DNA from: Podarcis gaigeae
Lineage: Eukaryota
DNA: 64,000 nt
Direction: 5' to 3' (one strand)
Assembly: GCA_964106915.2 (NCBI GenBank)
Contig: OZ066916.1
Notes under the pieces: generated by a model
Seen by the model: only the letters and a program-made list of their open reading frames with translations
Databases searched by the model: none
Told to the model about the DNA's origin: nothing
Shown here: positions 17,101-42,430 of the stretch, piece after piece
Position numbering within the stretch: position 1 is the first letter of the stretch
How the letters are laid out: every line of letters starts with the position of its first letter
Translations under genes and position numbers: made by a program

Positions 17101-20100
17101 CGTAATATAGGTCAGATATTGGGGGATTTGGATGGAATTCCTTTTGCAGTGAAAGACAACTTCAGCACAACTGGAATCGAAACAACATGTGCATCCAAGA
17201 TGCTAAAAGGTAAAGTAGCATTTTTAAGATAAGCTGACAACTTTGAGCTCTGCTCCTCAATCTATTAAGGATATGGATAGGAGTACTGTGGTTCTGTCTT
17301 AAATGGATTCATTCTTTTGTAGATAACTATGAGTAGATGTATTGGATCAGAGGTTTTCAACCTTTTTGAGTCCACAGCTCCCTGGACCAACAACATTCTT
17401 TCTGCGGCACCCCTGTGGGGCTCAGAAGCCCAGTTATGTCACTCTTTACCTGCAGAGCTGGCAGCCTCTCGCCCCTTTTCAAACACCCTCCCTTGTGGAG
17501 TGTTCCCTCAAGCTCCTCTCCTCTCCCCTGTCCTTGGGAGTCCTCCAGGCAGCAGCCGCCACTGCCCCTGGTCTCTGAGCTACCAGGTGTAAACCTCTTC
17601 AGATACCAATGTTGCACAGACACCAAAACAAAGACTCTAATCTTCAAGTCCACAGGCACTGACTAGTTCCACTGATTTCATTGATTCACTTGAATATTTT
17701 TAGAGCCTTGGTACCTCCCTGTCTTCACTTTGAAACTTGGGTAGTCTCAATAACAGTTTGCAGTTTAGTAAAGAGGTATGATGAATTCATAGAATCATAG
17801 AGTTGGAAGAGACCACAAGGGCCATCGAGTCCAACCCCCTGCCAAGCAGGAAACACCATCAGAGCACTCCTGACATATGGTTGTCAAGCCTCTGCTTAAA
17901 GACCTCCAAAGAAGGAGACTCCACCACACTCCTTGGCAGCAAATTCCACTGTCGAACAGCTCTTACTGTCAGGAAGTTCTTCCTAATGTTTAGGTGGAAT
18001 CTTCTTTCTTGTAGTTTGGATCCATTGCTCCGTGTCCGCTTCTCTGGAGCGGCAGAAAACAACCTTTCTCCCTCCTCTATGTTACATCCTTTTATATATT
18101 TGAACATGGCTATCATATCACCCCTTAACCTCCTCTTCTCCAGGCTAAACATGCCCAGCTCCCTTAGCCGTTCCTCATAAGTCATAGTTTCCAGGCCTTT
18201 GACCATTTTTGGTTGCCCTCCTCTGGACACGTTCCAGTTTGTCAGTGTCCTTCTTGAACTGTGGTGCCCAGAACTGGACACAGTACTCCAGATGAGGTCT
18301 GACTAGAGCAGAATACAGTGGCACTATTACTTCCCTTGATCTAGATGCTATACTCCTATTGATGCAGCCCAGAATTGCATTGGCTTTTTTAGCTGCCGCG
18401 TCACACTGTTGGCTCATGTCAAGTTTGTGGTAAACCAAGACTCCTAGATCCTTTTCACATTGAAAATGGGCAGAAAAATGCTGGCACAGTACATGTCTTA
18501 TTACTTGCTGGTTATCTTACTGGATTATTGCCAATATGTATGAAACCCTAAATTCTTCTACTATTAGTAGAGCACATCATTGTATAGGCTTTGAAAGGGG
18601 TACTAGAACCCTTCTGTATTATTAGTTGGGCAGCAGAACTCAGTATTTGTGGAACAAGTAATAAAGAGAGGGGAGATGTCAAGGTTGCCAAGACACGCTG
18701 CAGTTTTGAGAAGAGAATCTTCTCTCAGGCAACTATGATAGCAAACATCTAATCTTATTGAGGTAGTTTCCTGAAACAAGTTAAAAGTGCACCCCCATAA
18801 TACAAAACAATGAAATACCTGTGGTAGTCATATTCTCAGTAGGAATCCATGTAAACGGGGACTAATGGTAATATACATGGCATACTCATTAAAAAAACCA
18901 ACCTCACTAATATAAAACAATTCATCCAATCCAGTCTTTGTTTTTCAGGTTATATCCCCCCTTACAATGCAACTGTAGTTCAAAAATTGCTGGATCAAGG
19001 AGCTGTGCTTCTTGGAAAAACAAACTTAGATGAATTTGCCATGGGGTAAGCCAAGTTAAATATTTTTATGCTGTTGGGTGCCTGATGTGTTGCTTCACTT
19101 CTGTTTAACTACAGATGCAAGACTGCCTATCTTGATGCTTGGCTGAGAACATCATGTGGTGCTAAAGCTCTGGCTGCTCAGTTTTCCTCCTGCTTCTGAG
19201 ATTTTAGCAGACATTGGCCACATGGTTTCAAGCCTATCTTTGCAACCATATAAATTGGGTCACATGCTTCAGAGATGAAATTTATTACACCCTGCAAATA
19301 CATAGAAACATGGAAAATTGCCTTATACCAGGTCAGGCCATTGGTTCATCTAACTCAATATTTTCACACCAGTCTTCCCTTAACAGACACCCTCTAGATT
19401 CTTTGGACTACAGCTCCCATCATTCCTGATCATTGGTCATGCTGGCTGAGGCTGATGGGAGATGATGTTCCAAAACCTCTGGTGGGTAGCAGACTGGAGA
19501 AGGTTGGCCTATACTGACAGGTGGCAGCTCTCCAACTTTTCAAACAGAGATTTCCCAATGGGGTGAAACTTTCCAGAGTCTATAGGAGAGCTTCAGGTTG
19601 TTCACCCTGTGTGAACCAATCAAATTTAGGAGTGTCAACCGATTTATTTTTTGGTTCTGTTTCAGAGCAAAGGATTTCATATGTACTTGGAAAGAGAGAC
19701 AAAAAAGTTGTTAAATCTGTAGCTGAATTGATAAGCTTCAGGGGGCGTTCAACTAAGTTTTACTCAGAGTAGAGCCATTAAAACAATGGACCTAGCTTTT
19801 TTTGGGAGGGGTATTGGGTTGTTGTTTTCATTTTTATTATTTGTTTTTATTTTTATTATTTTTTTATTATGATTTTCTCATCTTAGCTCTGGAAGTACAG
19901 ATGGGGCATTTGGACCGGTTAGAAACCCCTGGAGTTACTCACGACAGTACAGAGAAAAGTGTGTGCAGAAACCCAGTGCTCAAAATGAAGACACCAGCTG
20001 GTTGATAACAGGAGGAAGCTCTGGAGGCAGTGCTGCTGCCGTATCGTCTTTCACATGCTTCACGTAAGAGGCTTTTTTAGAACAGCTTAATTAAAAGCAT

Positions 20101-23100
20101 CATAATGCAACTTCATAATATTTGCTGAGTGCCAACAAGGGCCTAAGTGCTGTTCATACCCAAGGGCCTAGGAGCAACCTGGTCCCTGATTAGATCCCTT
20201 ACTGTCAAATCTATATAGATAAGGCAGGACTTGGTAGAGGAGTACTGAGGACAGTGTAAAGTCCCCTTTTATGTCCAAAAGGTTGACTTAAGCCATGTCA
20301 TTCTAGACAAATTTCCATCCTCTCAGTGTGGGCATTTCGTATTGCTTGGAAAGGATTTATTGTGGCAATAAAGAAGAAAGGATGTTGCCAATATCCTCTG
20401 AACCTCCTCTCTTTGACAAGTGTTGTTTCCAGCAACTCAGGCACACAAAAAAAGGAGAAGGAATTTCGATTCAATGAAATCTACAGCATCTCCTCCCTTA
20501 CAATAAAACACCTTTTCATCCCAGGCTTTTGTGTTGACATCACTGTGGGCTAATAATTCATATAGAGTAGGATTTTCAGACTAACATTCTTCCGATCCTC
20601 GGTTTATTCTACATTTCATAGCTGTGCTGATACCAGTGCTTTATGTTTCTTTCTGTTTTGTGAAGAAATATAGTTTCGAAAAAGTTTAAAACGCAAGCCA
20701 GCTTTGAAGTCCTATTTGTCTTCATGAGAAAAATCTAAGTGGATTTTTAACTCTCCAATTTTCATAGAAGCATAGAAGAGTTTTGAAGGGACCATGAGGG
20801 ATCTTTCTCCCAATGTGGGGCTCAAACCCACGACCCTGAGATTAAGAGTCTCATGCTCTACTGACTAGGCTATCCCTCAGGGTGAAAGAATAGTTTTTCA
20901 GATTGCTTAATTTTAGCTGAATAGAGCCACTCTGTGTTTATTCTAAAAGGTAGAGTGTTTATTTGAATAATAATATTTTAATATTTAATTCAGAAATTTA
21001 TGCAACAATACACTTTTTAGTCAGGAAAATGTCTTTCTAAGCCTTGTTGCTATATATCCGTGGTTCCCAACGTGGGGCAATTTGATTTTTAAGGGGGGCA
21101 ATTCGAGAATGAGTGAATGGTCTTTTAGGCTTCCCTTTTTGAATAATAAGAATATATGGGGGGGGCACGGGGAGCATCAGGATTTTAGAGATGCTTAGGT
21201 GGGGCATGGCCAAAAAAAGGTTGGTAACCACTGCTATATATTTATAGCTCACTCTTCTTTCAAGGAAGTCAGCACCATAAGACTCCCAAGTGATCTCCCA
21301 TCAAGGTGCTTCTGAGAACTAAATCCCCTTGAGCCATATAACGTACCTTCAGATGACTTTGGTCTGCTCCTGATCTGGAAATGGTCTCTGTACTTAGACT
21401 GCATGAGAGAGGAAAGTCTGCTGAAACTCCATGAAGGAACACAATGCAAAAACTGCACCCTTTGAATTTCTTCCTGGCAAGCATATATTCCAGATAAAAC
21501 ACAGCCCTTTCAGACGAGGCACTTCACAGGCTGGCAGCAGTAATAGTAATCTGTATGTTGCTCTTAGACCAAGCAGTTTACGTATTGTGGTTAATTGCAT
21601 GTGCATTTCTTCATTGGAAAAGTGTTAGAAGTGATTGGTAGGTCATGATGCCTTGTTTCTGTAAAAAACAAAGACAGCCTGGGGAAGACATGCAATGGCT
21701 TCCCGGATTCCCATAGGCATCTGCTTGGCCCCTGTGAGAACAGGATGGTAGACTGGATGGGCCTTTGGTCTGATCCAACCAGGCTCTTATGTTCTTGCAG
21801 AGCAAATTGGGATGTGATGTCCTGACTGCCGTTATTATTATTTTTTTCAACCATAGGGCTCTGGGATCTGATACAGGAGGATCCACCAGAAACCCAGCTT
21901 CTCATTGTGGAGTGGTTGGCTTGAAGCCAACGTATGGCCTGGTTTCCCGTCACGGTCTTATTCCGCTGGTGAACTCTATGGATGTGCCGGGCATCTTTGC
22001 CAGATGTGTGGACGATGCAGCCACCGTGTTGGGTATAATGATTACACCTGTCTCCCTAGGGAATTCTGTCAAAGCTAGTTTGGCTCAAGGATTCTCTTTT
22101 CTTTCCTGTAGCTCATGAGTCTTTCTGCTTTGTTTCAGGGGCACTCAGTGGCCATGATCCAAAAGATTCAACCACCGTGCAGGACCCCGTCCACCCATTT
22201 CCGCTGCCCAATTTGACAGATGTGAAGGATGTTTGCATAGGCATACCAAAGGTAACTGGTATGTAAATAGCCACTTGGAGGGGGGAAATAAACACCAAAA
22301 TTAAATGTTAGTGAATTCCTATTGCCTATGACTGACATAGGTCATTAAAACATTTCTCTTTAACCAGGCCTTTGGCTGGTTAACATTGGTTTTCCTCTTA
22401 AATGTGTTTGTGGGAGTGGGGTTGGTTACTGGTTTGTTTTGGATCTTGTTCTTGGTTTTGCGATAATTTTTTATTGGAACTTTTCAACATACAATAAAAA
22501 ACAAACTAATCTAATTAAAAATAAAAAACAAAACGAGAAAAAGGGGGAAGCATAATGTTTTCATTGTGTATTTTGTGTTCTCATTTTTTATTTTTATATT
22601 GTGAACCGCCCAGCGATTTTCAGATGAAAGGCAGTATAAAAATTTAAATAATAATAATAATAAGTCAATCTGCAGAACACAATCAGTGTTGAAGAACAAT
22701 GGTACTGTATGTCTTATTCGACATTCATTAATCAGAATGAAAATATGCTTTAGGAAACGCTCTCTTTGGGCTTCCTCAGAACTGTCAGGAACAAGAAGTA
22801 CTCACTGAATGCCTGTCACACATACACTTTGAAAGAATCATTATATTTAATTATTCAACCAAAGTCTTCAAGGTGTTCTTCTAAGTTGACATGTGCACTC
22901 GCATTTCGAGATGCTTGAGGAATTTGGAGGATGTGAATTCCAAAAGTGGACTCCCCTGAGCTGCTAGTGTAAAGACTGGAACTAGGACTAATGTAAGGAC
23001 TGGAACATTCACTTCAGAATCGACACTCGCCCAATTCCACGGGGCAGGCTGAGTGTTGGAAAAATAGGCACAGACAACCAGGAACAGCTAGGAAGCATGG

Positions 23101-26100
23101 CTCCTGCCACACTTGTTGTAAATGGATATGCAAGTGCCCCTCCCTGAAAGCAATGATAGGAGTTGACATGCCACCCCCTTCAGAAAGATTATATTTTTTT
23201 AAAAGGCAGCTGCTCTTATGGGGGCAGCCTCCCTTGGGAGTAGGGAGGGAATGACACACCATTGCAGCTCATCACTCCCAAGGCAATTATGTATCCACCT
23301 TTAAAATAATATGTGAAGAGGGATTTTTGCCTTCTGAAGTTATTTGCACATGTTCCTCATTTTGGGTTATACACACGATTCCCCACCCTTTCCTTTGTGG
23401 ATGTCCTGTATTTTTCGCTCCATAAAACGCACCTGACTGTTAGACGCACCTAGTTTTTAGAAGGGGAATGCAATAAAAAAATATATATTTTTAAAGGGAG
23501 CGCTGAGCAGAGCCTGTATGCATCCCAGGCGCTGCTCAGCACTCCCTTGCACGAGCCGCGTGGAGCGTGTGTGGGGCGCTTGCAGGCTTTTCCCCAGGAG
23601 GGAGAAGAGCCCCCAAGAGCTGCACACAGGCTCCATGCAGCTAGTGAAAGGGATGCAGCCCTTGGGGGCTTTTGTGGGAGGTGGGGGAAGGGCCTGAGGG
23701 GCTGCCCTCTGTCCCTTCCCCCACCTTCCACAAAAGCCAGCAAGAGCCGTGCACCCTTTAAAGAGCGTGCAGCTTTTGCATGCTTTTCTATGAGGAGGCA
23801 GAAGGGACTGACCTGGCCAGTCAGTCCCTTCTCCTTCCTAAGGGAAAAGCCCCCAAGAGTGGCGCGCTCTTTAAAGGGTGTGTGGCTCCTGCGGGCTTTT
23901 CTACGAGGAGGGAGAAGGGACTGACACGGCCAGTCAGTCCCTTCTCCCTCCTGGGGAAAAGCTGGCAAGAGCCGCGTAGAGTGTGTGTGCGGCTCTTGGG
24001 GGCTTTTCCCGCCTGCAATCACTCCATAAGATGCACACACATTTCCCCTTACTTTTTAGGAGGGAAAAAGTGCATCTTATGGAGCAAAAAACAGGGTACT
24101 TTGATTCCCCCCCCCCCAGTGAGATGGTTTTTTTAGAGAACTAAATTCATAACATCCAGACCAAAACTCATAGTTGACCAATCTGACTTACTGCCAAAGA
24201 CTGCACTAAAAATAAGAGAAAAAGAACTACGCACACTCTGAAAGAAAGAAGTGTTGAATTACAATGTGATCTTTGCCATATCTGCTCAGAAATAGGTTCT
24301 GCGAAATTCAAAGAGGCTTCCTCTCAGGTAACGGGGTTAAGACTGCAGCCTTAATCACCACGGTGCAGCCTGCTTGTTAACTCATTGCCGGGAAATAGTG
24401 AAAACTTATAGCTCCTTCTGTTGAAAAAGAGCCTAGCTAAATCAAGGGGGAAAGCTGAAATGGCAAAGATTATTCACTATATACCAGCTGTTATTAGTAT
24501 TATAGATGGTAATATTTTTCACAGTTATTTAAAATGGTTACACCACTAAGAATGTTGTTCTGATTTGCAGAAACATTTTCACAATAGCCATTAATGGAAA
24601 CTGCTGGAACCAGGTCATCCCTGAATGCAGAACTGGGCCTTATTTGCAATCATTGCCCACCATTTAGTTTAATATGTCATGTTGTTACAAAATCTACCTC
24701 TATTATTTATATTAGCCTAAAGTCCTCCATCTGCACTGGGGCTTGTGGAAAGTCCTGTCAGGTCTTGGTCCTCCTTTTGCCAATGAGCTCCCCGTCAGTC
24801 ATTCTATCCTAGCTCATCATTTTGGTTCCCTGGGCTTTATGACTCAGCTCATTCCAGCCATTCCCAATTACCTTAGAAAGACAGGCTGGCCTCTGAAGCA
24901 AGCTGCAGTTTGGCACTGAATCTATAACTAAAACCAAACACATGCCATCCTAGCTGCCTGCTAAAGGAAGTATTCAATAATAATTTTTTTGAAAAGGACA
25001 AATTTTCACTTGGGAGTTTAACATGCTACAAATACTTGATAATTCTGGCTCAGCTAAGAACTGTGAAGATGCACATAAAGTTGTTGGTGCAGAGGGTTAT
25101 GCTTTTCACCCTCTCCCTTCTCTAGGAATACAACGTACCAGGATTGTCTAGTCAAACTCTGGCCGTGTGGTCCAAGGCAGCCGACCTCTTTGAGAAAGCT
25201 GGCGCCAAAGTGATTGATGTCAGACTCCCGCACACCTGTTACTCCATTGTCTGCTACCATGTGCTGTGTGCGGCAGAAGTAGCATCGAACATGGCCCGAT
25301 TTGATGGCCTGGAGTACGGTAAGGCTTCTTTCCAACAAGTGTCATGTAAATTAGATAAATTCATTGCCCTCAAAAGGTTATGCCCAAAAAGGCCTTACTA
25401 ACGAGAACAACTAGGGTATAATATTATAAATTATTCCTGTTCTTTAAGGCGCAGCCTATGAGCTGTGCAAGCCCTGCTGTCAGATTTGTTTCTAGTCTGC
25501 TTCTTCCAGTCATTATTGCTCCTGAACCTTTCTCTGTTGCTTACTGTGGCTGCAAGCCTTCACAGCACTGGCCTGCATCTTTCTATATGATCTACATAAT
25601 TTGTAGAATTGTAGTACACAACTGGAACACTAGCAGCTACTACAAACATCCAGTGTGCAAATCAGGTGGGAGTTTTTAATGTGGTGGAGAGGTGTTTTGT
25701 CTGTGTGTGAGAGAGAGGGAGATGAGGGGGTGGGACTAGTCCTCCCCACAGTATGATTGAGCAATGCCGGTCCACTTTATACATTTGCCATAACCCACTA
25801 ATGACTATACATTGATTTAATAAATCTAAACTAGAAATAAGTTCAATCCGAATGCATTTCGAATGGGAATGTGTTTCTGTGGTTAAAATCACACCTTTCA
25901 AAAGAGGAGTGTTTTTTTCTGCAAAAACATTACCTAGGACAATCACGTATGCTTTCCTCTGCTTTCCCCAACCCCTTCCTCTCCTCTCTTTGTCCATTCT
26001 GCCCAAACAGAGTAGTGAAACTTTCACCTTTGAAGGTAGGGGTTGGCTGACCCATGGCTAGGACTCACACACCCAGCAAGGTCAGGCAGCTGCCTATAGC

Positions 26101-29100
26101 GCATGTTCCACCCAACCAAGCATCAACCGTAGTATACCTCCTCCTGAAGTTTGAGATACCAACAGAAATAATAATTAAAAAGTGGACTGATTACTGTGGA
26201 TGTGTGTGAATGGTGTGCTACTTCTGGGAGAAAGGAAAGCACAGCAGCAGGAGGACTGATACACAAACCCTGGAGCTGATTGTAGGCTTGCTGGTTATTT
26301 GGTTTGCAGAGTGGCAAAGTATATGAAAATCACTAGTCTCTAAATTTGGCAGGCAGACAATGTCTCCACAGAACAAGGTTAGGGAAGGAAGCAACAGATC
26401 AGTTCTCAGAGGCGACCTGTTTTTGAACCGAATGCCCTGTTCCAGCGTAAACACAGGGATAATTTATTTGTAACTGGGAAGCAGTTCAAAGAGTGATGAT
26501 CTGAAAGGAAGTTGGTTGAGCCCTGCTAACCTGCCCCCAACAAGTTTCAGCCATAGTAAGCTGCAAGGCAGACAGTTCTGCATTAAAAACTAGAGCCAAG
26601 TACAGTAACGTAAAACAAATATTATCTTTAAGTCATTTGTCTGCTTACGTACACCTGCTTGTGAGTCTCAATTCACAGCATGTCCCTAGTTGATTAAATG
26701 CAGATCCATTAATTATGTCAGAGAAATGTGCAGCCTGCCACAATATGAACCAGCATATCTGATGTGCTTTTTAATTACAGAAAGATTATGTCTCTGCCAA
26801 AGCCTTTTTAGCACTGTGGAATGTCTCTTATTAGTTGCAGTGAGGTCTGCTGGTGGCCAAAATTTCTGTATTATTTCTGTGAGCATGTTTTTATTATGAC
26901 AGAAGTGTTGTCTCAGCTGTGTCCTTGGAAGAGTGCTCTGCAGGACAAAGTACATGCATTGTTCAGCTCAATTGTTCTTCTGCACTCAGGGTCAACTGAT
27001 GAGGGAATACAATGTTATTGAAATACCTCTGCACTTCCTGGTCAGAGACAATGGCTCCTGTTCAGTATCACCCTCCCTGTACTTTCCAGTGTACTTTTTA
27101 AGTGCCAAGTCAGTTGAAATATTGTACTTCAACACATTGACTCTCAAATGCCTGTTCCCAGCATTTTTATCAGGAAAAGAATAACAAAGCTGAACAAGTC
27201 CTGCCCCTTTTTCAAAACGTTTGTGTCAAAATATATTGCGAAACATATAAGCCTGCTGAAATCTGCAGCCACTTCATTGTGTCCTTTCCAAATCTTAGAT
27301 AATATATTCTAAATCAATATGAATTATTGGATATTATCAGATGAACCCCCTGACAGGGCATAAGTACCCTTGACGTACTCTGTATTATTCTTGCTAGATT
27401 GAAAATGTGTTTGCCTTAGGGCTGGGTTGAAACAGAACTTCACAGTCCCATTCACCAATCTGAAATGAGGCTTCCACTTTCAGAAGTTTTGAAGGAGGTT
27501 CCAAAGAGGGAGTAAACTGCTCGCTCAGATTAACAATAGTAGGAGCTCCAAGGGTGAAGCTGCAGGAAAAGAAGCACCTGCATGGTTCCAAGTTGTAGAA
27601 CTCCAGTTCCTATCAGCCCCAGCTAGCATGACTGCTGAGCAGGGATGATGGGAATTGTAGTCCAGCAACATCTGGCAATCCTCAAGGTCCACCTTCCTGA
27701 CTTAGGCGATGTGCAAGCGGTGGCTGCAATAGCATCTCCACGCCCTTTGCTTTCCTGCCATGTGCTCAAGCGCAGCCCTACTGCACACGCCCTTCCAGAA
27801 TGAGGACAATTTTATAAAGGAAAGTTTGCTTTCATTCCGAATCGGCTTTATTGATCCTCAGAGGATCTAATCAGACAGTGCCAAATCTAACTGGCTGTTT
27901 TGTGGCATAATACTGTCGTGTTCGCAACACAATCCCTGATATTCAGGGAACGTGTGAGGAAGAAAAGGTGCGGGGAGGAGTGAACAAAAACCTGGCACTA
28001 AAGCAGCTGCTCCGAGGGGCAGCTGGCAGCAAGAAAATTGGTACAAACAATGTAAAATTTTGGAAGGTTTTTTTGGGTGAGGGAGCATTCAAGGCCTCCC
28101 AGTTATCCCTCTTCATGCTAAAAATGTTCAACCAAGACCATTCAACTTGTCCCAAGTCAAATAGCTACTTGTGGTGGCTGCTGCTGCTGCTGAAACCCAC
28201 GTGATTTGTTTAGCTTCCTGGCCCATGAATAAACAGCACCTGACATTTAGCTGTGTGCAACAGCAGCAAATAAACCTCGGATATATTTGTACAGCGGGAC
28301 GCAGATGGCGCTGTGGGTTAAAGCCTCAGCGCCTAGGACTTGCCGATCGAAAGGTCGGCGGTTCGAATCCCTGCGGCGGGGTGCGCTCCCGTCGTTCGGT
28401 CCCAGCGCCTGCCAACCTAGCAGTTCGAAAGCACCCCCGGGTGCAAGTAGATAAATAGGGACCGCTTACCAGCGGGAAGGTAAACGGCGTTTCTGTGTGC
28501 GGCTCTGGCTCGCCAGAGCAGCGATGTCACGCTGGCCACGTGACCCGGAAGTGTCTCCAGACAGCGCTGGCCCCCGGCCTCTTGAGTGAGATGGGCGCAC
28601 AACCCCAGAGTCTGTCAAGACTGGCCCGTACGGGCAGGGGTACCTTTACCTTTACCTTTACCTATATTTGTACAGCACAGTAATTTCTATTGTTTATTCA
28701 TGAGGTGACTTTGAATGGTTTAAGATGCATTTCCAAATCACTGATGACTTTTAATTTTAGGGCACCGCAGCAGCGCTGACAAGTCCACCGAAGCCTTGTA
28801 TGCAGCCACGCGCCGGGAAGGCTTTAATGATGTTGTAAGGGGAAGAATTCTATCAGGAAACTACTTCTTGCTAAAACAGTAAGTTCAGCACATTTGAAAG
28901 CTCAAATTTACAAAGCTAGCATTTTATTTGTGGTTCAGTTAAGGGTGAAATTACTCATGTGGACAGATTTTTCCATGCAGTTAAGACAATATTATTATTG
29001 CTGATGCTGCTATAGCTGTAATATACAGCAAAACACTATTTCCTAAAATTATGACAATCTACTAAGCGTTTTCTTGTTTTCTATTCTCTCCTATGTGCCC

Positions 29101-32100
29101 TTTTAACCAGGGGCTTATTTTAAATAATCAGAAGTGAAAACCTCAACTTTTTGTGCATGTGTTAACTATAAAGCCTTTCCCCCCTTGGTCTCGTGTTTTG
29201 GATTAGAGAAACCTGGGTTCAAATGTCAGCTAAGGTGGGAACTATCATAGGTGACTCACCCTCTTGCAGGTCCATTTGAATGATTTCATGGAAGCAACCC
29301 AGACAGTTGAGTTAAATTCCCAAGAAAGCTATTTTGTTCTTACTATAAAACAGTATCCTGGCCAACTGGGGTGAAAGAGCTGACCAAAGAAGCAGATGTG
29401 AACAGTGGGCGACCAGAAGCCCAGAGGTCTAATACCTTCAGATGGGTAAATGTTCTAGATGTTTCTTAAGATCATGGGGCATTTACAAAACAGGCCTTAT
29501 AAGCACAATTTGTGCAACCCTATGCTGGTGTGATGCACTGGATAGATTGGCGAGACCTAGTCAGATTCCTGTTCAGCCATGATGGTCCCTGGATGGCTTT
29601 GGGCTAGTGGCTGTCTGTCAGCTTTGCTTACTCTACAGGACATTTACAAGGATAAAGTGAGATGACCCTATGCACATGCTTGGAGGAGATTGGTGGTGAC
29701 AATAAAATGCGCAAGCTCTGAGCAACCAGGTGGAATTAAAGGCAGCTGTGAGTTAGGTGGAAGAAATGACCAAAGAGAAATCCCAATTTGAGTTAAGATG
29801 CCCAATGTGTGCTTAGATGGAGGGAAGAAAATCAAAGCAATAGCTAAAGTTATTCAGATTGGGGCCCATGTCAGCTCATCATACCATACCAATCTTGTTT
29901 TGAAAACCTTCAAGAAAAAAGGAAATTACAACTTTTCTGGATAGCCTGTTGCCAAACTGCTTTGCAGTAAAGAAGAGCATTTTGCCAAATATTTTAACCC
30001 TAGTTCAACTCTTCCATCCTTTTGTGTCTTGCTCTTAGAGTGCACCACCTGCTATTACTGTATAATATCACAACACTTCAGCAACTGTTACTGCCATACA
30101 CGTTGGAGTTAATGATAGGCGCTTAAGATTATGCAGTTTAGGATTGTGTGAGCTGCTGATCTAAATGAATGATGCTGTGTTCCTAACTATGCAGGCATAC
30201 TTAGAAGCAAGTCCTGATGGACTGAGACTTAACATGTCTCACATGTCTTAAAATTGTAATTATGCAACTCTTTAGCCCATGATATCTGTCATGGTGTTCT
30301 GTTGCGCCAGAAGCGGTTTAGTCATGCTGGCCACATGACCTGGAAAGCTGTCTGTGGACAAATGCTGGCTCCCTCAGCCTGAAAGTAAGATGAGTGCCAC
30401 AACCCCATAGTCACCTTTGACTGGACTTAACTGTCCAGGGGTCCTTTACCTTTTATATGCCAGTAAAATCTGATGTACTCTCTTGCTTAATAAACTGTGA
30501 TCATCATTTCCACCCTTTTGTTGTTGTTTAGTCGTTTAGTCGTGTCCGACTCTTCGTGACCCCATGGACCACAGCACGCCAGGCACTTCTGTCTTCCACT
30601 GCCTCCCGCAGTTTGGTCAGACTCATGTTTGTAGCTTCGAAGACACTATCCAACCATCTCATCCTCTGTCGCCCCCTTCTCCTTGTGCCCTCCATCTTTC
30701 CCAACATCAGGGTCTTCTCCAGGGAGTCTTCTCTTCTCATGAGGTGGCCAAAGTATTGGAGCCTCAGCTTCACGATCTGTCCTTCCAGTGAGCACTCAGG
30801 GCTGATTTCCTTAAGAATGGATCGGTTTGTTCTTCTTGCAGTCCATGGGACTCTCAAGAGTCTCCTCCAGCACCATAATTCAAAAGCATCAATTCTTCGG
30901 CGATCTGCCTTCTTTATGGTCCAGCTCTCACTTCCATACATCACTACTGGGAAAACCATAGCTTTTACTATACGGACCTTTGTTGGCAAGGTGATGTCTC
31001 TACTTTTTAAGATGCTGTCTAGGTTTGTCATTGCTTTCCTCCCAAGAAGCAGGCGTCTCTTAATTTCGTGGCTGCTGTCACCATCTGCAGTGATCATGGA
31101 GCCCAAGAAAGTAAAATTTCTCACTGCCTCCATTTCTTCCCCTTCTATTTGCCAGGAGGTGATGGGACCAGTGGCCATGATCTTTGTTTTTTGATGTTGA
31201 GCTTCAGGCCATATTTTGCGCTCTCCTCTTTCACCCTCAATAAAAGGTTCTTTAATTCCTCCTCACTTTCTGCCATCAAGGTTGTGTCATCTGCATATCT
31301 GAGGTTGTTGATATTTCTTCCAGCGATCTTAATTCCGGCTTGCGATTCATCCAGCCCAGCCTTTTGCATGATGAATTCTGCATATAAGTTAAATAAGCAG
31401 GGAGACAATATACAGCCTTGTCGTACTCCTTTCCCAATTTTGAACCAATCAGTTGTTCCATATCCAGTTCTAACTGTAGCTTCTTGTCCCACATAGAGAT
31501 TTCTCAGGAGACAGATGAGGTGATCAGGCACTCCCATTTCTTTAAGAACTTGCCATAGTTTGCTGTGGTCGACACAGTCAAAGGCTTTTGCATAGTCAAT
31601 GAAGCAGAAGTAGATGTCTTTCTGGAACTCTCTGGCTTTCTCCATAATCCAGCGCATGTTTGCAATTTGGTCTCTGGTTCCTCTGCCTCTTCTAAATCCA
31701 GCTTGCACTTCTGGGAGTTCTCAGTCCACATACTGCTTGAGCCTTCCTTGTAGAATTTTAAGCATAACCTTGCTAGCGTGTGAAATGAGTGAAATTGTGC
31801 GGTAGTTGGAGCATTCTTTGGCACTGCCCTTCTTTGGGATTGGGGTGTAGACTGATCTTCTCCAATCCTCTGGCCACTGCTGAGTTTTCCAAACTTGCTG
31901 GCATATTGAGTGTGGCACCTTAACAGCATCATCTTTTAAAATTTTAAATAGTTCAGCTGGAATACCATCACTTCCACTGGCCTTGTTATTTGCAATGCTT
32001 TCTAAGGCACCCTAGTCTTGTTTAAATGCAACAGGGCAGAAAAGCAGGATCAGGAAAATGAATGGCTCTCTCTAGCTATGTAAAGATAGGTATGTTGAGG

Positions 32101-34677
32101 CAGATGACTTTAATCCAACCTTCTGATAATCCAGAAGGTGAGGGAGAAAAAAGCCACAAGCAGTAGCTGCACAGCACATATGAAAAGACAGCTGAGAGAC
32201 ACCCAATACTTGAATTTGAGGTCCAGTATTGCACTACCCCACGTTCACTAAACTGTTACTATGCATCTGCTGTTTGGTTAAATTATCCTTTTCTCATTTG
32301 TCAAGATTTTAAACATTAGCAATACAGTCGTACCTCGGAAGTCAAATGGAATCCCTTCTGGAAGTCCATTTGACTTCCAAAATGTTTGGAAACTAAGGCG
32401 TGGCTTCCGATTGGCTGTAGGAAGTTCCTGCAGCCAATTGGAAGCCACACCGGACGTTTGGGTTCCAAAGAACATTTGCAAATCAGAACACTCACTTCCG
32501 GGTTTGTGGCGTTCGGGAGCCAAAACATTTGACTCACAAGTAGTTTGTTAACCAAGGTTCAACTGTACTCTTCATTTCTAAGAGTAGCTAAGCACTGAAG
32601 TCAGATAGTCCTCTTATCTGAACAACTGAGGCCAGCGTTACAATGCTTTGACTTAATTGGTTTTCTTTAGCTGTAGACTCAGGGAGAAAAGATATCATCT
32701 TGTTTGCAATTTTTGCACACACATCCAAATGCTGCAATTGGCTAAAAGACTCAATGTCCTGTTGCTAGTTCTCACAAAATGTGTTTTCCCCTCTAGGAAC
32801 TATGAGAATTACTTCATCAAAGCCCAGAAAGTGAGAAGACTCATTGCCAATGATTTTGCAAAAGTCTTTCATTCTGGTGTCGATATTTTGCTCACTCCAA
32901 CAACTATGAGCCACACTGTACCATATGTGGAATTCATCAAAGAGGATAACAGAACCCGCAGCACCCAGGATGATATTTTTACTCAGGCTGCCAACATGGC
33001 TGGTGAGAACATCTGAGTGGTTCATATACTTATCTAATCTTAGTTGTTGCTTATTGAATTTGCCATTCCCAGACAGACATCTTCTTTGTGCAGCATTCCT
33101 GAAGGCTTCCCAGCAGTATGCAAAAATGGGGGGGAAACCCTGTACTGATCACCACTATTATAGGAAAGGTTTCTCTCCCCCCCCCCCCATCATTTTTAAA
33201 TAATAAAAAAAAGCATTATAATGTTATAGCATAATAATGTGCTTTCATGGTATTTCACTATTTAAAGGTTTTTTTAAAATAACAAATAGCAAGGAAAGTG
33301 TTTCTGCAGTAATTTAAAGCTATTTAAAATAATATATAGAGTAATAAAAGCACCTATTACAAAGGCTATGGTAAATGTGTGCTGAGCTATGGATTGACCT
33401 TCCTTGGTATGTCACTGCATATAGCAAAACCACTCTCTTAAAAGAAGAATAGCTCTAAGGCTACCTACATAGGTGTAGATTGTGCTGCTCTGAAAAAAAA
33501 GTCAGACTATATTGTTTGAGAAAAGGCAGAAGGACTACAAGGAAAAGACAATGACTGAATGACAGCATTGTGTGGATGCCCCAATAAAAAAACAACAGCA
33601 AACAAAGGGGAGGCAATTCTACTCATTGGAGGCTTTTAAGCAGAGGTTGGATGGGTATATGCCATGGGTGTTGAGATTCCAACTCTACAATTCTATGATT
33701 CTACTGCACTCCTGATGGGACACGGGTGGCGCTGTGGGTTAAACCACAGAGCCTAGGACTTGCCGATCAGAAGGTCGGCAATTCAAATCCCTGCGACGGG
33801 GCGAGCTCCCATTGCTCGGTCCCTGCTCCTGCCAACCTAGCAGTTCGAAAGCACCTCAAAGTGCAAGTAGATAAATAGGTACCGCTCCAGCGGGAAGGTA
33901 AACGGCGTTTCCGTGTGCTGCTCTGGTTCGCCAGAAGCTGCTTAGTCATGCTGGCCACATGACCCGGAAGCTGTACGCTGGCTCCCTCGGCCAATAAAGT
34001 GAGATGAGCGCTGCAACCCCAGAGTTGGTCACGACTGGACCTAATGGTCAGGGGTCCCTTTACCTTTTTAGGTAAAGGTAAATGGACCCCTGACCACTAG
34101 GTCCAGTCGTACGGCACTCCTAAAGTGGAGGCAAAAAGGTTCATTAATCTTGCTGCCTAGATAACTGCTCAAGAAGCCCAATCCATGTGGCCGAGTCTAT
34201 CTTGGATGCTTTTGAAAGTAGTCTGGAAAAAAGAGCCTATTAGAAATGGAAGATGTGTATGCCTTGTCCTTAGTTACAGCATGGGACAGTGAAATTGTGC
34301 TTTCTCCTCTTATACCTGTGCATTCTCCCCATTGAGGCTGGCAATATTACTGCTAGGAGAAGAAATAATGCCAAATTAATGCCTTGTGTATTGGTTTTTG
34401 TTTTACCATTGAATAGTGTGTGATTCTATCAAACGATGTAAATAATGATCTATTTTGTCTTTCAGGGCTACCAGCTGTAAATGTTCCTTCTGCACTTTCA
34501 GAGACAGGCTTACCAATTGGGCTGCAGTTTATTGGCCGCGCATTCCACGAGGAACAGCTTCTCACAGTTGCCAAATGGTTTGAAAAGCAAGTGCAGTTCC
34601 CTGTCTTAGAGCTACAAGGGATGATGAATCATCTTGACACTGTCTCTCACCAGGAGAAGTCAGCATTCTTTTCATGA
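13973..34677 (+). CDS. QRSL1: Glutamyl-tRNA(Gln) amidotransferase subunit A, mitochondrial (GatA, amidase family); complete, 11 coding exons, 1575 nt, 524 aa
   Basis: All exons GT-AG and in frame; amidase signature AVKDN (Lys), [21 protein letters not shown] (Ser-cisSer-Lys triad intact); [18 protein letters not shown] motifs. Confidence 0.98.
15742..15901 (+). CDS. QRSL1: QRSL1 coding exon 2 (ISIALKEGQ...KRYRQ)
   Basis: TTTCAG acceptor, G|GTAAT donor, 160 nt. Confidence 0.96.
16099..16277. mobile_element. Old hAT-like MITE
   Basis: CAGGGCTGCCC ... GGGCTGGCCCTG termini; partial 8-bp TSD. Confidence 0.5.
17111..17209 (+). CDS. QRSL1: QRSL1 coding exon 3 ([18 protein letters not shown]...SKMLK)
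   Basis: TAG acceptor, G|GTAAA donor, 99 nt; catalytic Lys. Confidence 0.96.
17788..18460 (-). mobile_element. CR1 LINE 3' fragment (ORF2 C-terminus + 3' UTR) in QRSL1 intron 3
   Basis: [19 protein letters not shown] and [12 protein letters not shown]-like motifs; (ATTCTATG)n-type tail; one frameshift. Confidence 0.95.
18949..19045 (+). CDS. QRSL1: QRSL1 coding exon 4 ([11 protein letters not shown]...[11 protein letters not shown])
   Basis: TTTTCAG acceptor, GG|GTAAG donor, 97 nt. Confidence 0.97.
19887..20063 (+). CDS. QRSL1: QRSL1 coding exon 5 ([15 protein letters not shown]...[17 protein letters not shown])
   Basis: CTTAG acceptor, AC|GTAAG donor, 177 nt. Confidence 0.97.
20763..20876 (-). 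mobile_element. tRNA-Lys(CTT)-derived SINE, internally deleted
   Basis: Reverse complement reads GTAGAGCATGAGACTCTTAATCTCAGGGTCGTGGG... then a CR1-type CTTCTATG tail. Confidence 0.8.
21058..21233. mobile_element. hAT MITE
   Basis: TIR CCGTGGTTCCCAAC/GTTGGTAACCACTG; exact 8-bp TSD CTATATAT. Confidence 0.88.
21857..22032 (+). CDS. QRSL1: QRSL1 coding exon 6 ([14 protein letters not shown]...AATVL)
   Basis: CATAG acceptor, G|GTATA donor, 176 nt; nucleophile Ser. Confidence 0.96.
22139..22251 (+). CDS. QRSL1: QRSL1 coding exon 7 ([13 protein letters not shown]...IGIPK)
   Basis: TTTCAG acceptor, AAG|GTAAC donor, 113 nt; 106-bp preceding intron. Confidence 0.94.
23406..24096. mobile_element. Tc2/pogo-like non-autonomous DNA transposon with GC-rich palindromic interior
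   Basis: Termini CTGTATTTTTCGCTCCATAAAACGCAC and GTGCATCTTATGGAGCAAAAAACAGGG-TA are inverted repeats. Confidence 0.8.
25126..25318 (+). CDS. QRSL1: QRSL1 coding exon 8 (EYNVPGLSS...[11 protein letters not shown])
   Basis: TCTAG acceptor, G|GTAAG donor, 193 nt. Confidence 0.97.
28296..28662 (+). mobile_element. Sauria SINE, full length, young
   Basis: tRNA-like A/B boxes (GTTCGAATCC), (ACCTTT)n tail, exact 14-bp TSD TATATTTGTACAGC at 28282-28295 and 28663-28676. Confidence 0.93.
28761..28878 (+). CDS. QRSL1: QRSL1 coding exon 9 ([22 protein letters not shown]...YFLLK)
   Basis: TTTTAG acceptor, CA|GTAAG donor, 118 nt. Confidence 0.96.
30301..30454 (+). mobile_element. Sauria SINE 3' half
   Basis: GTCATGCTGGCCACATGACC core and CCTTTACCTTTT tail. 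Confidence 0.85.
30517..32007 (-). mobile_element. 5'-truncated BovB LINE (RT half) in QRSL1 intron 9
   Basis: Near-identical to 36611-38108; (CAA)n tail; TSD CACCCT at 30511-30516 and 32008-32013; 1-nt frameshift in an A-run and one TGA. Confidence 0.95.
32325..32565. mobile_element. Tc1/mariner MITE
   Basis: TA-CAGTCGTACCTCGG ... CCAAGGTTCAACTG-TA. Confidence 0.8.
32797..33002 (+). CDS. QRSL1: QRSL1 coding exon 10 ([14 protein letters not shown]...TQAANMA)
   Basis: TCTAG acceptor, G|GTGAG donor, 206 nt. Confidence 0.97.
33717..34110 (+). mobile_element. Sauria SINE followed by an inverted copy of its own 3' tail
   Basis: Same family as 28296-28662; 34074-34110 is the reverse complement of the 3' tail starting at 34031; GCACTCCT repeats flank the whole unit. 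Confidence 0.9.
34466..34677 (+). CDS. QRSL1: QRSL1 coding exon 11 (GLPAVNVP...KSAFFS stop)
   Basis: TTTCAG acceptor, TGA at 34675-34677. Confidence 0.96.
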
Positions 34678-35447: not shown

Positions 35448-36624
35448 TTCTGTGCAAGAACTCTCTAACCAGCTAGCACTGCATCACTGCATGCAAAGTT
35501 TATGTCTTCCAGATTGGCATGAAAGTCAAAGAGTGGGCCCCCAATTTTTTTTTTGGGGGGGGGGGAATGGTTGATAGGAAAGATTCTTGCAGAAAGTATG
35601 GAGGCTGCTGCTGTATGTAGTAACTGCAGGTGCACCAACTCAAGACACAGAGTTTATTGGGTTGGTTCATGAATAAAAGATTATGATGAACCCATTATCG
35701 TATCTACCTATTGAGCTAGCAGTCTTCCTAAAGACAGCATCCCATTTTGTACTAGTTGTCAGTTCAACTCTGGAAACAGATAAGCTCAGAGGGCCTTTTC
35801 AGGTATTTCATTTTGTAATGAAAAACCAATTGTCAAGCACAGGGCAGGAGTCATTTATTAATTGTCTAACATGTAAATTAGGGCGTTCACCCACAAAATA
35901 TACACAAGTGGTTAACTGGCAACTGGATTACCAATACGAAAAGGATATGATTTACACATGCATGCTTTGTAAGATAGCATTGTATTACATTTTGTTCACA
36001 GTAGTTGCTTCCTAAGCACAACGTATGATGTGCAGCCTCCTAAATGCTATTTATGCTTGTATTATTCCAAAAAGAGATTTGGTTGAATATGAGCGGATCA
36101 GCCCACCATGAAATTCACTAGGATGATGCTCTTGAGAAGATGGGCTAATTTGGTCATAGTGTAATACACTCAGCAGGTAAGGAAGCTGCTCCCAGAACTA
36201 TGTCTTCCAACCGACCTCCTTTACGTTGACGTAGCCATTTGTCCCTTCTGAATCTGATCAATATTAACACCAACACAAAGGCACTCTGAAACCTGGGAAC
36301 TATAGTTTCCAAAGTCAAGTTCAGAAAGTCTCCCAGTTTGTGTTAAGTGGGGTTTGCAGTCATTCAACCGTAATTCCATACCATCATGGAGAAAATAGGA
36401 GTAATTGCTCTACAACAAGGGAGGTTAACTTGGGAAAGGAAGTAGTATGGGCCACTTCCTTAACTCTAGGTAAATGTCAGCATTGTGTTATGCCTTTACT
36501 AGCCTCTCTGCCTAAAGTATTTAACAAGGTTAAGGACACAGAAGAACTGGATAAGGGCCATCAAGTGCCTAATTCACTGAAGAGTCTACTCTGAGTTGGA
36601 CTTAGTGAATGTTGTTGTTGTTGT

Positions 36625-39600
36625 TTAGTCGTTTAGTCGTGTCTGACTCTTCGTGACCCCATGGACCAGAGCACGCCAGGCACCTCTGTCCTCCACTGCC
36701 TCCCGCAGTTTGGTCAAACTCATGCTGGTAACCTCGAAAACACTATCCAACCATCTCGTCCTCTGCCGTCCCCTTCTCCTTGTGCCCTCCATCTTTCCCA
36801 ACATCAGGGTCTTCTCCAGGGAGTCTTCTCTTCTCATGAGGTGGCCAAAGTACTGGAGCCTCAGCTTCACAATCTGTCCTTCCAGTGAGCACTCAGGGTT
36901 GATTTCCTTCAGTATGGAGAGGTTTGATCTTCTTGCAGTCCATGGGACTCTCAAGAGTCTCCTCCAGCACCATAATTCAAAAGCATCAATTCTTCGGCGA
37001 TCAGCCTTCTTTATGGTCCAGCTCTCACTTCCATACATCACTACTGGGAAAACCATAGCTTTAACTATACGAACCTTTGTTGGCAAGGTGATGTCTCTAC
37101 TTCTCAAGATGCTGTCTAGGCCTGTCATTGCCCTTCTCCCAAGAAGCAGGCGTCTTTTAATTTCGTGGCTGCTGTCACCATCTGCAGTGATCATTGAGCC
37201 CAAGAAAGTAAAATCTCTCACTACCTCCATTTCTTCCCCTTCTATTTGCCAGGAGGTGATGGGACCAGTGGCCATGATCTTCGTTTTTTTGATGTTGAGC
37301 TTCAGACCATATTTTGCGCTCTCCTCTTTCACCCTCATTAAAAGGTTATTTAATTCCTCCTCACTTTCTGCCATCAAGGTTGTGTCATCTGCATATCTGA
37401 GGTTGTTGATATTTCTTCCGGCAATCTTAATTCCGGCTAGGGATTAATCCAGCCCAGCCTTTCGCATGATGAATTCTGCATATAAGTTAAATAAGCAGGG
37501 AGACAAAATACAGCCTTGTCGTACTCCTTTCCCAATTTTGAACCAATCAGTTGTTCCATATCCAGTTCTAACTGTAGCTTCTTGTCCCACATAGAGATTT
37601 CTCAGGAGACAGATGAGGTGATCAGGCACTCCCATTTCTTTAAGAACTTGCCATAGTTTGCTGTGGTCGACACAGTCAAAGGCTTTTGCATAGTCAATGA
37701 AGCAGAAGTAGATATCTTTCTGGAACTCTCTAGCTTTCTCCATAATCCAGCGCATGTTTGCAATTTGGTCTCTGGTTCCTCTGCCTCTTCTAAATCCAGC
37801 TTGCACTTCTGGGAGTTCTCAGTCCACATACTGCTTGAGCCTTCCTTGTAGAATTTTAAGCATAACCTTGCTAGCGTGTGAAATGAGTGCAATTGTGCGG
37901 TAGTTGGAGCATTCTTTGGCACTGCCCTTCTTTGGGATTGGGGTGTAGACTGATCTTCTCCAATCTTCTGGCCACTGCTGAGTTTTCCAAACTTGCTGGC
38001 ATATTGAGTGTAGCACCTTAACAGCATCATCTTTTAAAATTTTAAATAGTTCAGCTGGAATACCATCACTTCCACTGGCCTTGTTATTTGCAGTGCTTTC
38101 TAAGGCCCATTTGACTTCACTTTCCAGGATGTCTGGCTCAAGGTCAGCAACCACACTACCTGGGGTATACGAGACATCCATTTCTTTCTGGTATAATTCC
38201 TCTGTGTATTCTTGCCACCTCTTCTTGATGTCTTCTGCTTCTGTTAGGTCCTTTCCACTTTTGTCCTTTATTATGGAAATCTTTGTATGAAATGTTCCTT
38301 TCATATCTCCAATTTTCTTGAACAGATCTCTGGTTCTTCCCATTCTATTGCTTTCCTCTATTTCTTTGCATTGCTCGTTTAAGAAGGTCTTCTTGTCTCT
38401 CCTTGCTATTCTTTGGAAATCTGCATTCAATTTCCTGTATCTTTCACCATCTCCCTCGCATTTTGCTTGCCTTCTCTCCCCCGCTATTTGTAAGGCCTCA
38501 TTGGACAGCCACTTTGCTTTCTTGCATTTCCTTTTCGTTGGGATGGTTTTCATTGCTGCCTCCTGTATAATGTTACGAGCCTCCATCCATAGTTCTTCAG
38601 GCATTCTGTCCACCAAATCTAAATCCTTAAACCTGTTCCTCACTTCCACTGTGTATTCATAAGGGATTTGACTTAGATTGTATCTTACCGGCCCAGTGGT
38701 TTTTCCTACTTTCTTCAGTTTAAGCTTGAATTTTGCTATAAGAAGCTGATGATCTGAGCCACAGTCAGCTCCAGGTCTTGTTTTTGCTGACTGTATAGAG
38801 CTTCTCCATCTTTGGCTGCAGAGAATATAATCAATCTGATTTCGATGCTGCCCATCTGGTGATGTCCATGTGTAGAGTCGTCTCTTGTGTTGTTGGAAAA
38901 GCGTGTTTGTGATGACCAGCTTGTTCTCTTGACAGAACTCTATTAGCCTTTGCCCTGCTTCGTTTTGATCTCCAAGGCCAAACTTGCCAGTTGTTCCTTT
39001 TATCTCTTGACTCCCTACTTTAGCATTCCAATCCCCTATAATGAGAAGAACATCCTTCTTTGGTGTCACTTCTATAAGGTCTTGTAAGTCTTCATAGAAT
39101 TGGTCAATTTCAGTTTCTTCAGCACAAGTAGTTGGTGCATAAACTTGGATTACTGTGATGTTAAAAGGTCTGCCTTGGATTCGTATCGAGATCATTCTAT
39201 CATTTTTGAGATTGCATCCCAGTACAGCTTTCGCCACTCTTTTGTTTACTATGAGGGCCACTCCATTTCTTTTACGGGTTTCTTGCCCACAGTAGTAGAT
39301 ATGATGGTCATCTGAACTGAATTCACCCATTCCCGTCCATTTTAATTCACTGATGCCCAGGATGTCAATATTTATTCTTGCCATCTCATTTTTGACCACC
39401 TCCAACTTACCCAGGTTCATGGTTCTTACATTCCAGGTTCCTATGCAATATTTTTCTTTACAGCATTGGACTTTCCTTTCGCTTCCAGGCATATCCACAA
39501 CTGAGCGTCCTTTCGGCTTTGGCCCAGCCGCTTCATCAGCTCTGGATCTACTTGTACTTGCCCTCCGCTCTTCCCCAGTAGCATGTTGGACGCCTTCCGA

Positions 39601-39657
39601 CCTGAGGGGCTCATCTTCCAGCGTCATATCTTTTATATGCCTGTTGTCTTTGTCCAT
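36625..39657 (-). pseudogene. BovB ORF (about 1010 aa from first ATG) in a single frame with two premature stops (TGA 37819-37821, TAA 37444-37446)
   Basis: The three ORF-track fragments 37819-39726, 37444-37806 and 36625-37377 are in the same frame; no frameshift. Confidence 0.93.
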
Positions 39658-39708
39658 GGAGTTTTCTTGGCAGGGATACTGGAGTGGCTTGCCGGTTCCT
39701 CCTCCAGG

Positions 39709-39836
39709 TGGATCACATTTGGTCAAAACTCTCCACTATGACCTGTTCATCTTGGGTGCCCTGCTCGGCATAGTTCATAGCTTCTCTGAGTTCTTCAAGC
39801 CCCTTCGCCACGGCAAGGCAGTGATCCATGAAGGGG
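39709..39836 (-). ncRNA. Candidate HDV-like self-cleaving ribozyme at the BovB 5' end
   Basis: Manual fold: P1 CCCCUUC/GAAGGGG, P2 UGGAUCAC/GUGAUCCA, P3 GCC/GGC, L3 UUGCCGU, P4 AGAACUC/GAGUUUU, J4/2 GACCAAA, in HDV order. Confidence 0.6.
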
Positions 39837-41928: not shown

Positions 41929-42430
41929 CTAGACAGCATCTTAAAAAGCAGAGACATCACCTTGCCAACAAAGGTCCGTATAGTTAAAGCTATGGTTATC
42001 CCAGGAGTGATGTATGGAAGTGAGAGCTGGACCATAAAGAAGGCTGATCGCTGAAGAATTGATGCTTTTGAATTATGGTGCTGGAGGAGACTCTTGAGAG
42101 TCCCATGGACTGCAAGAAGATCAAACCTATCCATTCTGAAGGAAATCAGCCCTGAGTGCTCACTGGAAGGACAGATCGTGAAGCTGAGGCTAGAATACTT
42201 TGGCCCCCTCATGAGAAGAGAAGACTCCCTGGAAAAGATCCTGATGTTGGGGAAGATTGAGGGCACAAGGAGAAGGGGGCGACAGAGGACGAGATGGTTG
42301 GACAGTGTTCTCAAAGCTACCAGCATGAGTTTGAGCAAACTGCGGGAGGCAGTGGAGGACAGGAGTGCCTGGCGTGCTCTGGTCCATGAAGTCACGAAGA
42401 GTCGGACACGACTAAACGACTAAACAACAA
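41929..42430 (+). mobile_element. BovB 3' fragment (about 500 bp)
   Basis: [15 protein letters not shown]...KSRTRLND C-terminus with one in-frame TGA, CAACAA tail; no clear TSD. Confidence 0.93.

Follow-up and report, generated by a model that had tools for sequence, protein, structure and literature searches.

An HDV-like ribozyme fold at the 5' end of a lacertid BovB retrotransposon

The first 128 nt of a full-length BovB LINE in Podarcis gaigeae contain, in order, all the elements of an HDV-like ribozyme (positions 39836-39709, minus strand, of the 64,000-nucleotide stretch of contig OZ066916.1, assembly GCA_964106915.2, that we analysed and here call the window). The presence of an HDV-like fold at this lacertid BovB 5' end, which had been proposed from the letters of the sequence, is confirmed, and its predicted cut, between 39837 and 39836, would fall at the first base of the element. 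We consider it quite probable that the fold cuts BovB RNA from a transcript running into the element, using C39722, and then shields the uncapped end of the product.

The element and the parts of the fold

The element is a BovB LINE of the RTE clade, 3,226 bp long, which lies on the minus strand from 39836 to 36611 between two copies of a 13-bp target-site duplication (TSD; 39847-39835 and 36610-36598), the last two bases of the 5' copy being common to the start of P1. It has the features by which BovB and the RTE clade are recognized, namely a single endonuclease and reverse transcriptase reading frame, a length of about 3.2 kb, a microsatellite tail, here (CAA)n at the 3' end (36611-36624), a TSD, and identity to Bov-B. 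The reading frame starts at 39657 and extends over 1010 codons (36625-39657, minus strand), with in-frame stops at codons 613 and 738; an endonuclease domain was detected in the full-length element, while the reverse transcriptase match came from a 96% identical fragment elsewhere in the window. At the protein level the identity is 95% to Podarcis muralis, 91% to Zootoca and 75-79% to bovine proteins, and the 5' end agrees with that of the published P. muralis Bov-B (PMC13295347). Judged by its sequence, this is a young but broken lacertid BovB.

The element lies antisense to an amidase gene (exons at about 19900-34677, plus strand), about 1.9 kb beyond the last coding exon, which ends near 34677; we take this gene to be QRSL1. 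A faint ADH_N match on the opposite strand from the amidase gene (12817-13206, minus) may be an exon of RTN4IP1, and no minus-strand gene reading into BovB was found in the window. Two 5'-truncated BovB copies, at 30518-32008 (minus) and 41929-42430 (plus), are 96% and 94% identical to the full-length copy, and a partial tRNA match at 20815-20872 (minus, 36.5 bits) is probably the head of a SINE.

The fold is a nested double pseudoknot that follows the order of the HDV class: P1, P2, P3, L3, P3', P1', P1.1', P4, J4/2 and P2'. The 5' strand of P1 (39836-39830), with C at +1, forms seven Watson-Crick pairs with 39806-39800. It is followed by the 5' strand of P2 (39828-39821), which forms 8 bp with 39716-39709, the 3' strand that ends the fold and was placed by both descriptor match and alignment; U39820 adds a pair with A39718. 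P3 is a helix of 3 bp (39819-39817 with 39809-39807) closing a 7-nt L3, in which U39816 and G39811 occupy the reverse wobble positions and G39814 pairs with C39799, next to the 3' strand of P1, to give a single-pair P1.1 adjoining U39798 opposite U39815. The long P4 arm and its loop (39797-39725) comprise an outer helix (39795-39788 with 39731-39725) and an inner helix (39781-39775 with 39741-39735), and J4/2 (39724-39717) carries an invariant C39722, a variable base at 39721, and A39720 and A39719. The strands and helix sizes given in the original prediction are all present at their positions, and they agree with the class in having a P1 of 6-7 bp, a P3 of 3 bp, U and G in L3, a P1.1 of 1-2 bp, and in J4/2 an invariant C followed by N-R-A.

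A single P1.1 pair beside a U-U mismatch is also found in the CPEB3 ribozyme, which differs in being a single-copy intronic locus with G at +1, a short P4 and a P1.1 pair of opposite polarity. The G at +1 of the HDV/CPEB3 subtype is absent from BovB, the first pair being C-G in all copies compared. The original prediction had entered this as a caveat, which carries little weight because ribozymes of trypanosomatid retroelements with C at +1 cleave (PMC4035085).

Covariation and the element boundary

To assess conservation of the fold we aligned six intact 5' ends, those of the window copy, Zootoca (L035), Pogona (L042), Varanus (L054), a metagenome copy (L016) and the fluke Paragonimus westermani (L039); a further sequence labelled as human gut metagenome (L019) was excluded from every comparison. 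The fluke element has 65% protein identity, shares the extended fold of the lizards with a 24-nt insert in its P4 loop, and lies on a contig that begins inside P2, after the 5' strand of P1. Within 25 core pairs we counted ten compensatory cells, against 0-2 when the partners were slid by 1-3 columns, and five pairs were cleanly compensatory, a pattern seen in 3% of the column pairs taken as background (binomial 8e-4); the copies are few and related, and one helix register was picked after viewing them, so that these statistics are indicative. All five clean pairs lie inside helices of the original prediction: two in P2 (Pogona), one in P3 (fluke) and two in P4 (Varanus and fluke).

Counting all pairs, the compensatory changes in P2, P3 and P4 come from the Zootoca, Pogona, Varanus and fluke copies. 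They fall in P2 at 39823 and 39822 (Pogona) and at 39821 (Paragonimus), and in P4 at 39791 (Varanus), 39789 (Paragonimus), 39795 and 39794; P3 is paired in 18 of 18 cells, with a change from G-C to A-U in Paragonimus. The covariation expected of every helix was thus seen in these three, whereas P1 and P1.1 showed no compensatory change among the BovB copies. P1 is paired in 34 of 35 cells, one wobble and one break each occurring in single copies, and P1.1 is G-C, with its neighbouring U-U, in all six; since both are nearly invariant, it is their complementarity alone that speaks for them. The L3 U and G are present in five copies, the decayed L016 having lost this pair.

The alignment also refines several details. 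The catalytic base had been given as either C39722 or C39721. The former is C in all six copies, and position 39721 is C, U or A, which makes C39722 the candidate and led us to reject C39721. At the top of P2, a U-pyrimidine pair was discarded (0 of 6 paired), while U39820 pairs with A39718 in all six copies and 39717 (C or U) is bulged, an arrangement that would give a canonical C-N-A-A J4/2. As for P4, the register first described also pairs in this subfamily, but the changes across species favour one in which 39793 is bulged. We considered and rejected the idea that G39793 and the 38-codon upstream ORF described below are private to the window copy; both belong to the main P. muralis subfamily.

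The predicted cut was said to coincide with the TSD boundary, with two shared bases. This is borne out by the 13-bp TSD of the window copy, whose boundary is ambiguous by those 2 nt, and by six other copies in which the TSD ends exactly before P1: Zootoca, Varanus, two rotifer-type elements (L037 and L038) and two published P. muralis copies. The Pogona copy has three extra T at the boundary, and no TSD was found for the P. raffonei copy (L055). Full-length copies do share this 5' end: among the first 103 rows of the alignment of published P. muralis copies longer than 3 kb, 89 reach the second base of P1, 4 begin within two further bases and 10 are shorter, in rows that are bounded by the authors' query and in which upstream extensions are therefore invisible. 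The site of the predicted cut and the TSD-defined first base of full-length copies would then be one and the same, the pattern looked for in 5' processing.

Ruminant-type copies and related RTE elements

A different picture emerges from ruminant-type BovB, represented in our tree by ten copies from metagenomes. An 18-nt deletion in these copies takes the 3' part of L3, P3', P1' and the P1.1 partner, so the dominant ruminant-type BovB cannot form the ribozyme and, on the evidence of these sequences, is an element that amplified without an intact one. The reading of the BovB 5' end as an HDV-like ribozyme is supported for the lizard copies, which are intact and covarying, but not for the dominant ruminant type. 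The deleted copies retain P3 5', the start of L3 and the 5' strand of P2, most of them with a U-A to C-G change, so that the compensatory P2 change given for ruminants in the original prediction is real. The sequence of P2, P4 and J4/2 persists despite the lost core, and in the youngest copies the P4 arm has lost another 2 nt.

Upstream, the ruminant-type copies carry extra sequence, which in the longest of them is a leader of 60-63% GC with 40-bp repeats and a CpG value of 0.46-0.61, compared with 0.22 in the reading frame (core deletion and GC/CpG-rich repeat leader at L001:240-345 and L003:1010-1500, and in L017, L018 and L023). This leader is probably a promoter. We built a tree from the part of the element that follows the ribozyme, with a midpoint root and a bootstrap that is not fully settled. 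The deleted copies group together in it (99/96), nested within a clade (100/99) in which P3' and P1' are still present in the basal members L016 and L034; this points to a single origin of the core deletion. L034 carries a SINE like those in bovine-type contigs, which we take to be Bov-tA, and we accordingly treat L034 as ruminant DNA. The simplest reading is that the ribozyme was intact when BovB entered ruminants and was later replaced by the promoter-like leader.

More distant RTE elements carry other self-cleaving RNAs at the same boundary. The rotifer-type elements L037 and L038 (56-59% protein identity) have exact 5' ends formed by a compact 78-nt HDV-like fold of different sequence, with C at +1 and a 2-bp P1.1 (L037:1298-1375; L038:1287-1364); the Rfam HDV model RF02682 spans both end to end (E 0.0027 for L038 and 0.055 for L037), below the gathering score. 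A tRNA gene (1191-1261) lies about 25 bp upstream of the L037 insertion. In the mite Dinothrombium tinctorium, an RTE with 49% protein identity (L043) has a twister-P1 at its TSD-defined 5' end (L043:931-1002; 61.8 bits, E 1.3e-11, just under the gathering score), and the TSD ends at the expected cut. The RTE of Adineta steineri (L040, 61% protein identity) differs in its 5' region, and within L040:900-1200 we found no descriptor or Rfam match and no TSD. That self-cleaving RNAs of different kinds occur at one boundary is the best indirect evidence for selection on cleavage. Viral contigs, scanned with both pattern and protein queries, gave no match, and genome contigs yielded only short BovB-like contigs without 5' ends. 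BovB-like contigs in bacterial genome assemblies (L044-L052) are most likely contamination with animal DNA.

Just downstream of the ribozyme lies a second, H-type pseudoknot (39707-39669, minus strand), which is situated in the segment common to BovB and Bov-A SINEs. It consists of a 6-bp helix (39707-39702 with 39684-39679) and a 4-bp helix (39693-39690 with 39672-39669), shows compensatory changes in Paragonimus, Anolis and rotifers, and is kept in the ribozyme-deleted ruminant-type copies. Its start (39701-39707) can also pair with 39829-39834 in the 5' strand of P1, extending P2 (minus strand); as a reading of the sequence, it is possible that this pairing is a switch that turns the ribozyme off once the downstream RNA has been made. 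Inside the ribozyme itself is an upstream ORF of 38 codons (39829-39713, minus strand), starting at +8. It has 12 codons in Zootoca, Pogona and Varanus, where its stop overlaps the bulged P4 base, and rotifer elements have an upstream ORF of 15 codons.

Mechanism, alternatives and significance

The sequence of events that we favour would begin with a host transcript, or one from an upstream start, reading into BovB, after which P1, P3, P1.1, P4 and P2 would fold co-transcriptionally and C39722, with Mg2+, would cleave between the flank and C+1. The resulting RNAs would all start at this base, without a cap, shielded at that end by the fold, and the end would be copied whenever reverse transcription is completed. 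The second pseudoknot, which lies 12 nt upstream of the start codon, may have a role in translation or in binding protein. The dominant ruminant-type lineage lost the ribozyme through the 18-nt deletion, and its GC/CpG-rich repeat leader, the probable promoter, took over the 5' end.

An alternative is that the fold is real and of ribozyme descent, yet in BovB it cleaves only slowly, if at all; the 5' end would then be set by an internal promoter, and the fold would be kept for RNA protection, for translation or for binding the protein encoded by the element. There is precedent in L1Tc, where promoter and ribozyme share the same 77 nt and downstream sequence inhibits cleavage (PMC3185411), and the persistence of P2, P4 and J4/2 in ruminant-type copies after loss of the core suggests that these parts may have a second role. 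Competing folds are also predicted for the BovB 5' end. The pseudoknot-free minimum pairs P3 and L3 with the P4 loop and lies 10 kcal/mol below the fold with P2, P3 and P4 forced, a gap about equal to what P1 would return, and the 5' strand of P1 has an alternative partner just downstream of P2; the predicted Pogona fold contains the P4 arm. We rejected minimum-energy folding as a test of the ribozyme, because the method cannot form pseudoknots. Against slow or absent cutting, lizards and the fluke have C39722, the L3 U and G and the P1.1 pair in common, save for the L3 pair lost in the decayed L016, and the exchange of unrelated ribozyme classes at this position argues for selection on cleavage. 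We think this alternative unlikely, although it is the most serious of those considered.

Far less probable is a compact active form, about 67 nt long and resembling that of rotifers, with a nearer P2 partner at 39777-39770 and a catalytic C near 39780. That segment can pair with the 5' strand of P2 in 40 of 48 cells, but it does so with an invariant central mismatch, many wobbles and zero compensatory change, and it leaves unpaired bases between P2 and P3, whereas with the far partner 46 of 48 cells are paired and three pairs are compensatory. For its mismatch and its want of compensation the near partner was rejected in favour of the far one.

Searches with structural descriptors bear on whether the pairing could have arisen by chance. 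An HDV descriptor, a check that had been suggested for this segment, matched this one site in 128 kb (the window on both strands) and nothing in 5.1 Mb of dinucleotide shuffles, and a looser one had no match in 7.7 Mb of shuffles and, across 283 kb of related loci, just three matches, all at RTE 5' ends; both were written with the element in view and are partly tuned, so these figures express rarity and are not probabilities. The search against Rfam 15 ribozyme families went the other way, with no match for the BovB form in the region, the whole window or the BovB 5' ends, probably because of the long P4. Chance pairing in a conserved 5' UTR is the least probable explanation of all, since the missing Rfam match and the ordinary pseudoknot-free folding of the region (z -1.06) are set against three results: shuffled sequence amounting to millions of bases gave no match, three helices covary, and the fit to the TSD boundary is exact.

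Ribozymes at the 5' ends of RTE-clade elements have been reported before (PMC5786205; PMC6765202; PMC8501958). As described in the first two reports, the HDV-like ones share with BovB the clade, the position, the fold class and a proposed excision from a host co-transcript, and the BovB form differs from those described there in its long P4 arm and the bulged top of its P2. Our literature search returned no paper that places a ribozyme in BovB or in another vertebrate RTE; an earlier mention in Ruminski 2011 is possible. The ribozymes of the trypanosomatid elements L1Tc, ingi and SIDER (PMC3185411, PMC4035085) resemble that of BovB in having C at +1 as the cut point, a single-pair P1.1 and a location at +1 of a TSD-flanked LINE, but they belong to another clade and measure 77 nt against 128 nt, and L1Tc has demonstrated promoter activity. 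Those of R2 (PMC3774820) share the double pseudoknot, a P1 of 6-7 bp, the L3 reverse wobble and the catalytic C. Among R2 ribozymes P4 differs greatly in length and can be long, and P2 mismatches are likewise variable (PMC3774820). Insertion of R2 is restricted to 28S rDNA and its J1/2 is often long, while BovB inserts widely and has a J1/2 of 1 nt. The twister variants of Perere-3, an RTE of Schistosoma mansoni (PMC8501958), likewise cleave next to the TSD and are transcribed from host promoters, an arrangement also shown by the mite element, but they are of an unrelated class and use flanking sequence, whereas the BovB fold lies wholly inside the element. Hence lizard BovB would be a further member of the known RTE 5' HDV-like ribozymes, and the loss in ruminants and the exchange of ribozyme classes may be the more surprising results.

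If cleavage occurs as proposed, HDV-like ribozymes would be present in hundreds of full-length copies per lizard genome; P. muralis has 435 Bov-B copies over 3 kb (PMC13295347). It would also account for the retention of the downstream pseudoknot, but not of the first 128 nt, in SINEs derived from BovB, the loss of a LINE ribozyme segment by SINEs having been proposed in general terms by Kojima (PMC5786205), and it may bear on UTR design for RTE-based gene insertion tools (PMC13708176). BovB is well known for moving from one species to another. A wider scenario, which we regard as possible but doubtful, is that BovB crosses species as a promoter-independent carrier of its ribozyme, that in ruminants one deletion lost the ribozyme and a host-adapted GC-rich promoter leader was gained before the largest expansion, and that the RTE 5' end is an exchangeable module (extended HDV, compact HDV, twister or promoter) whose ribozyme state favours horizontal transfer. 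The history of loss in ruminants is compatible with this idea and does not show it. With self-cleavage, BovB would gain a concrete route to making its RNA, and the existence of both intact and deleted 5' ends offers a ready-made comparison that makes one explanation of the frequent transfer of RTE elements testable.
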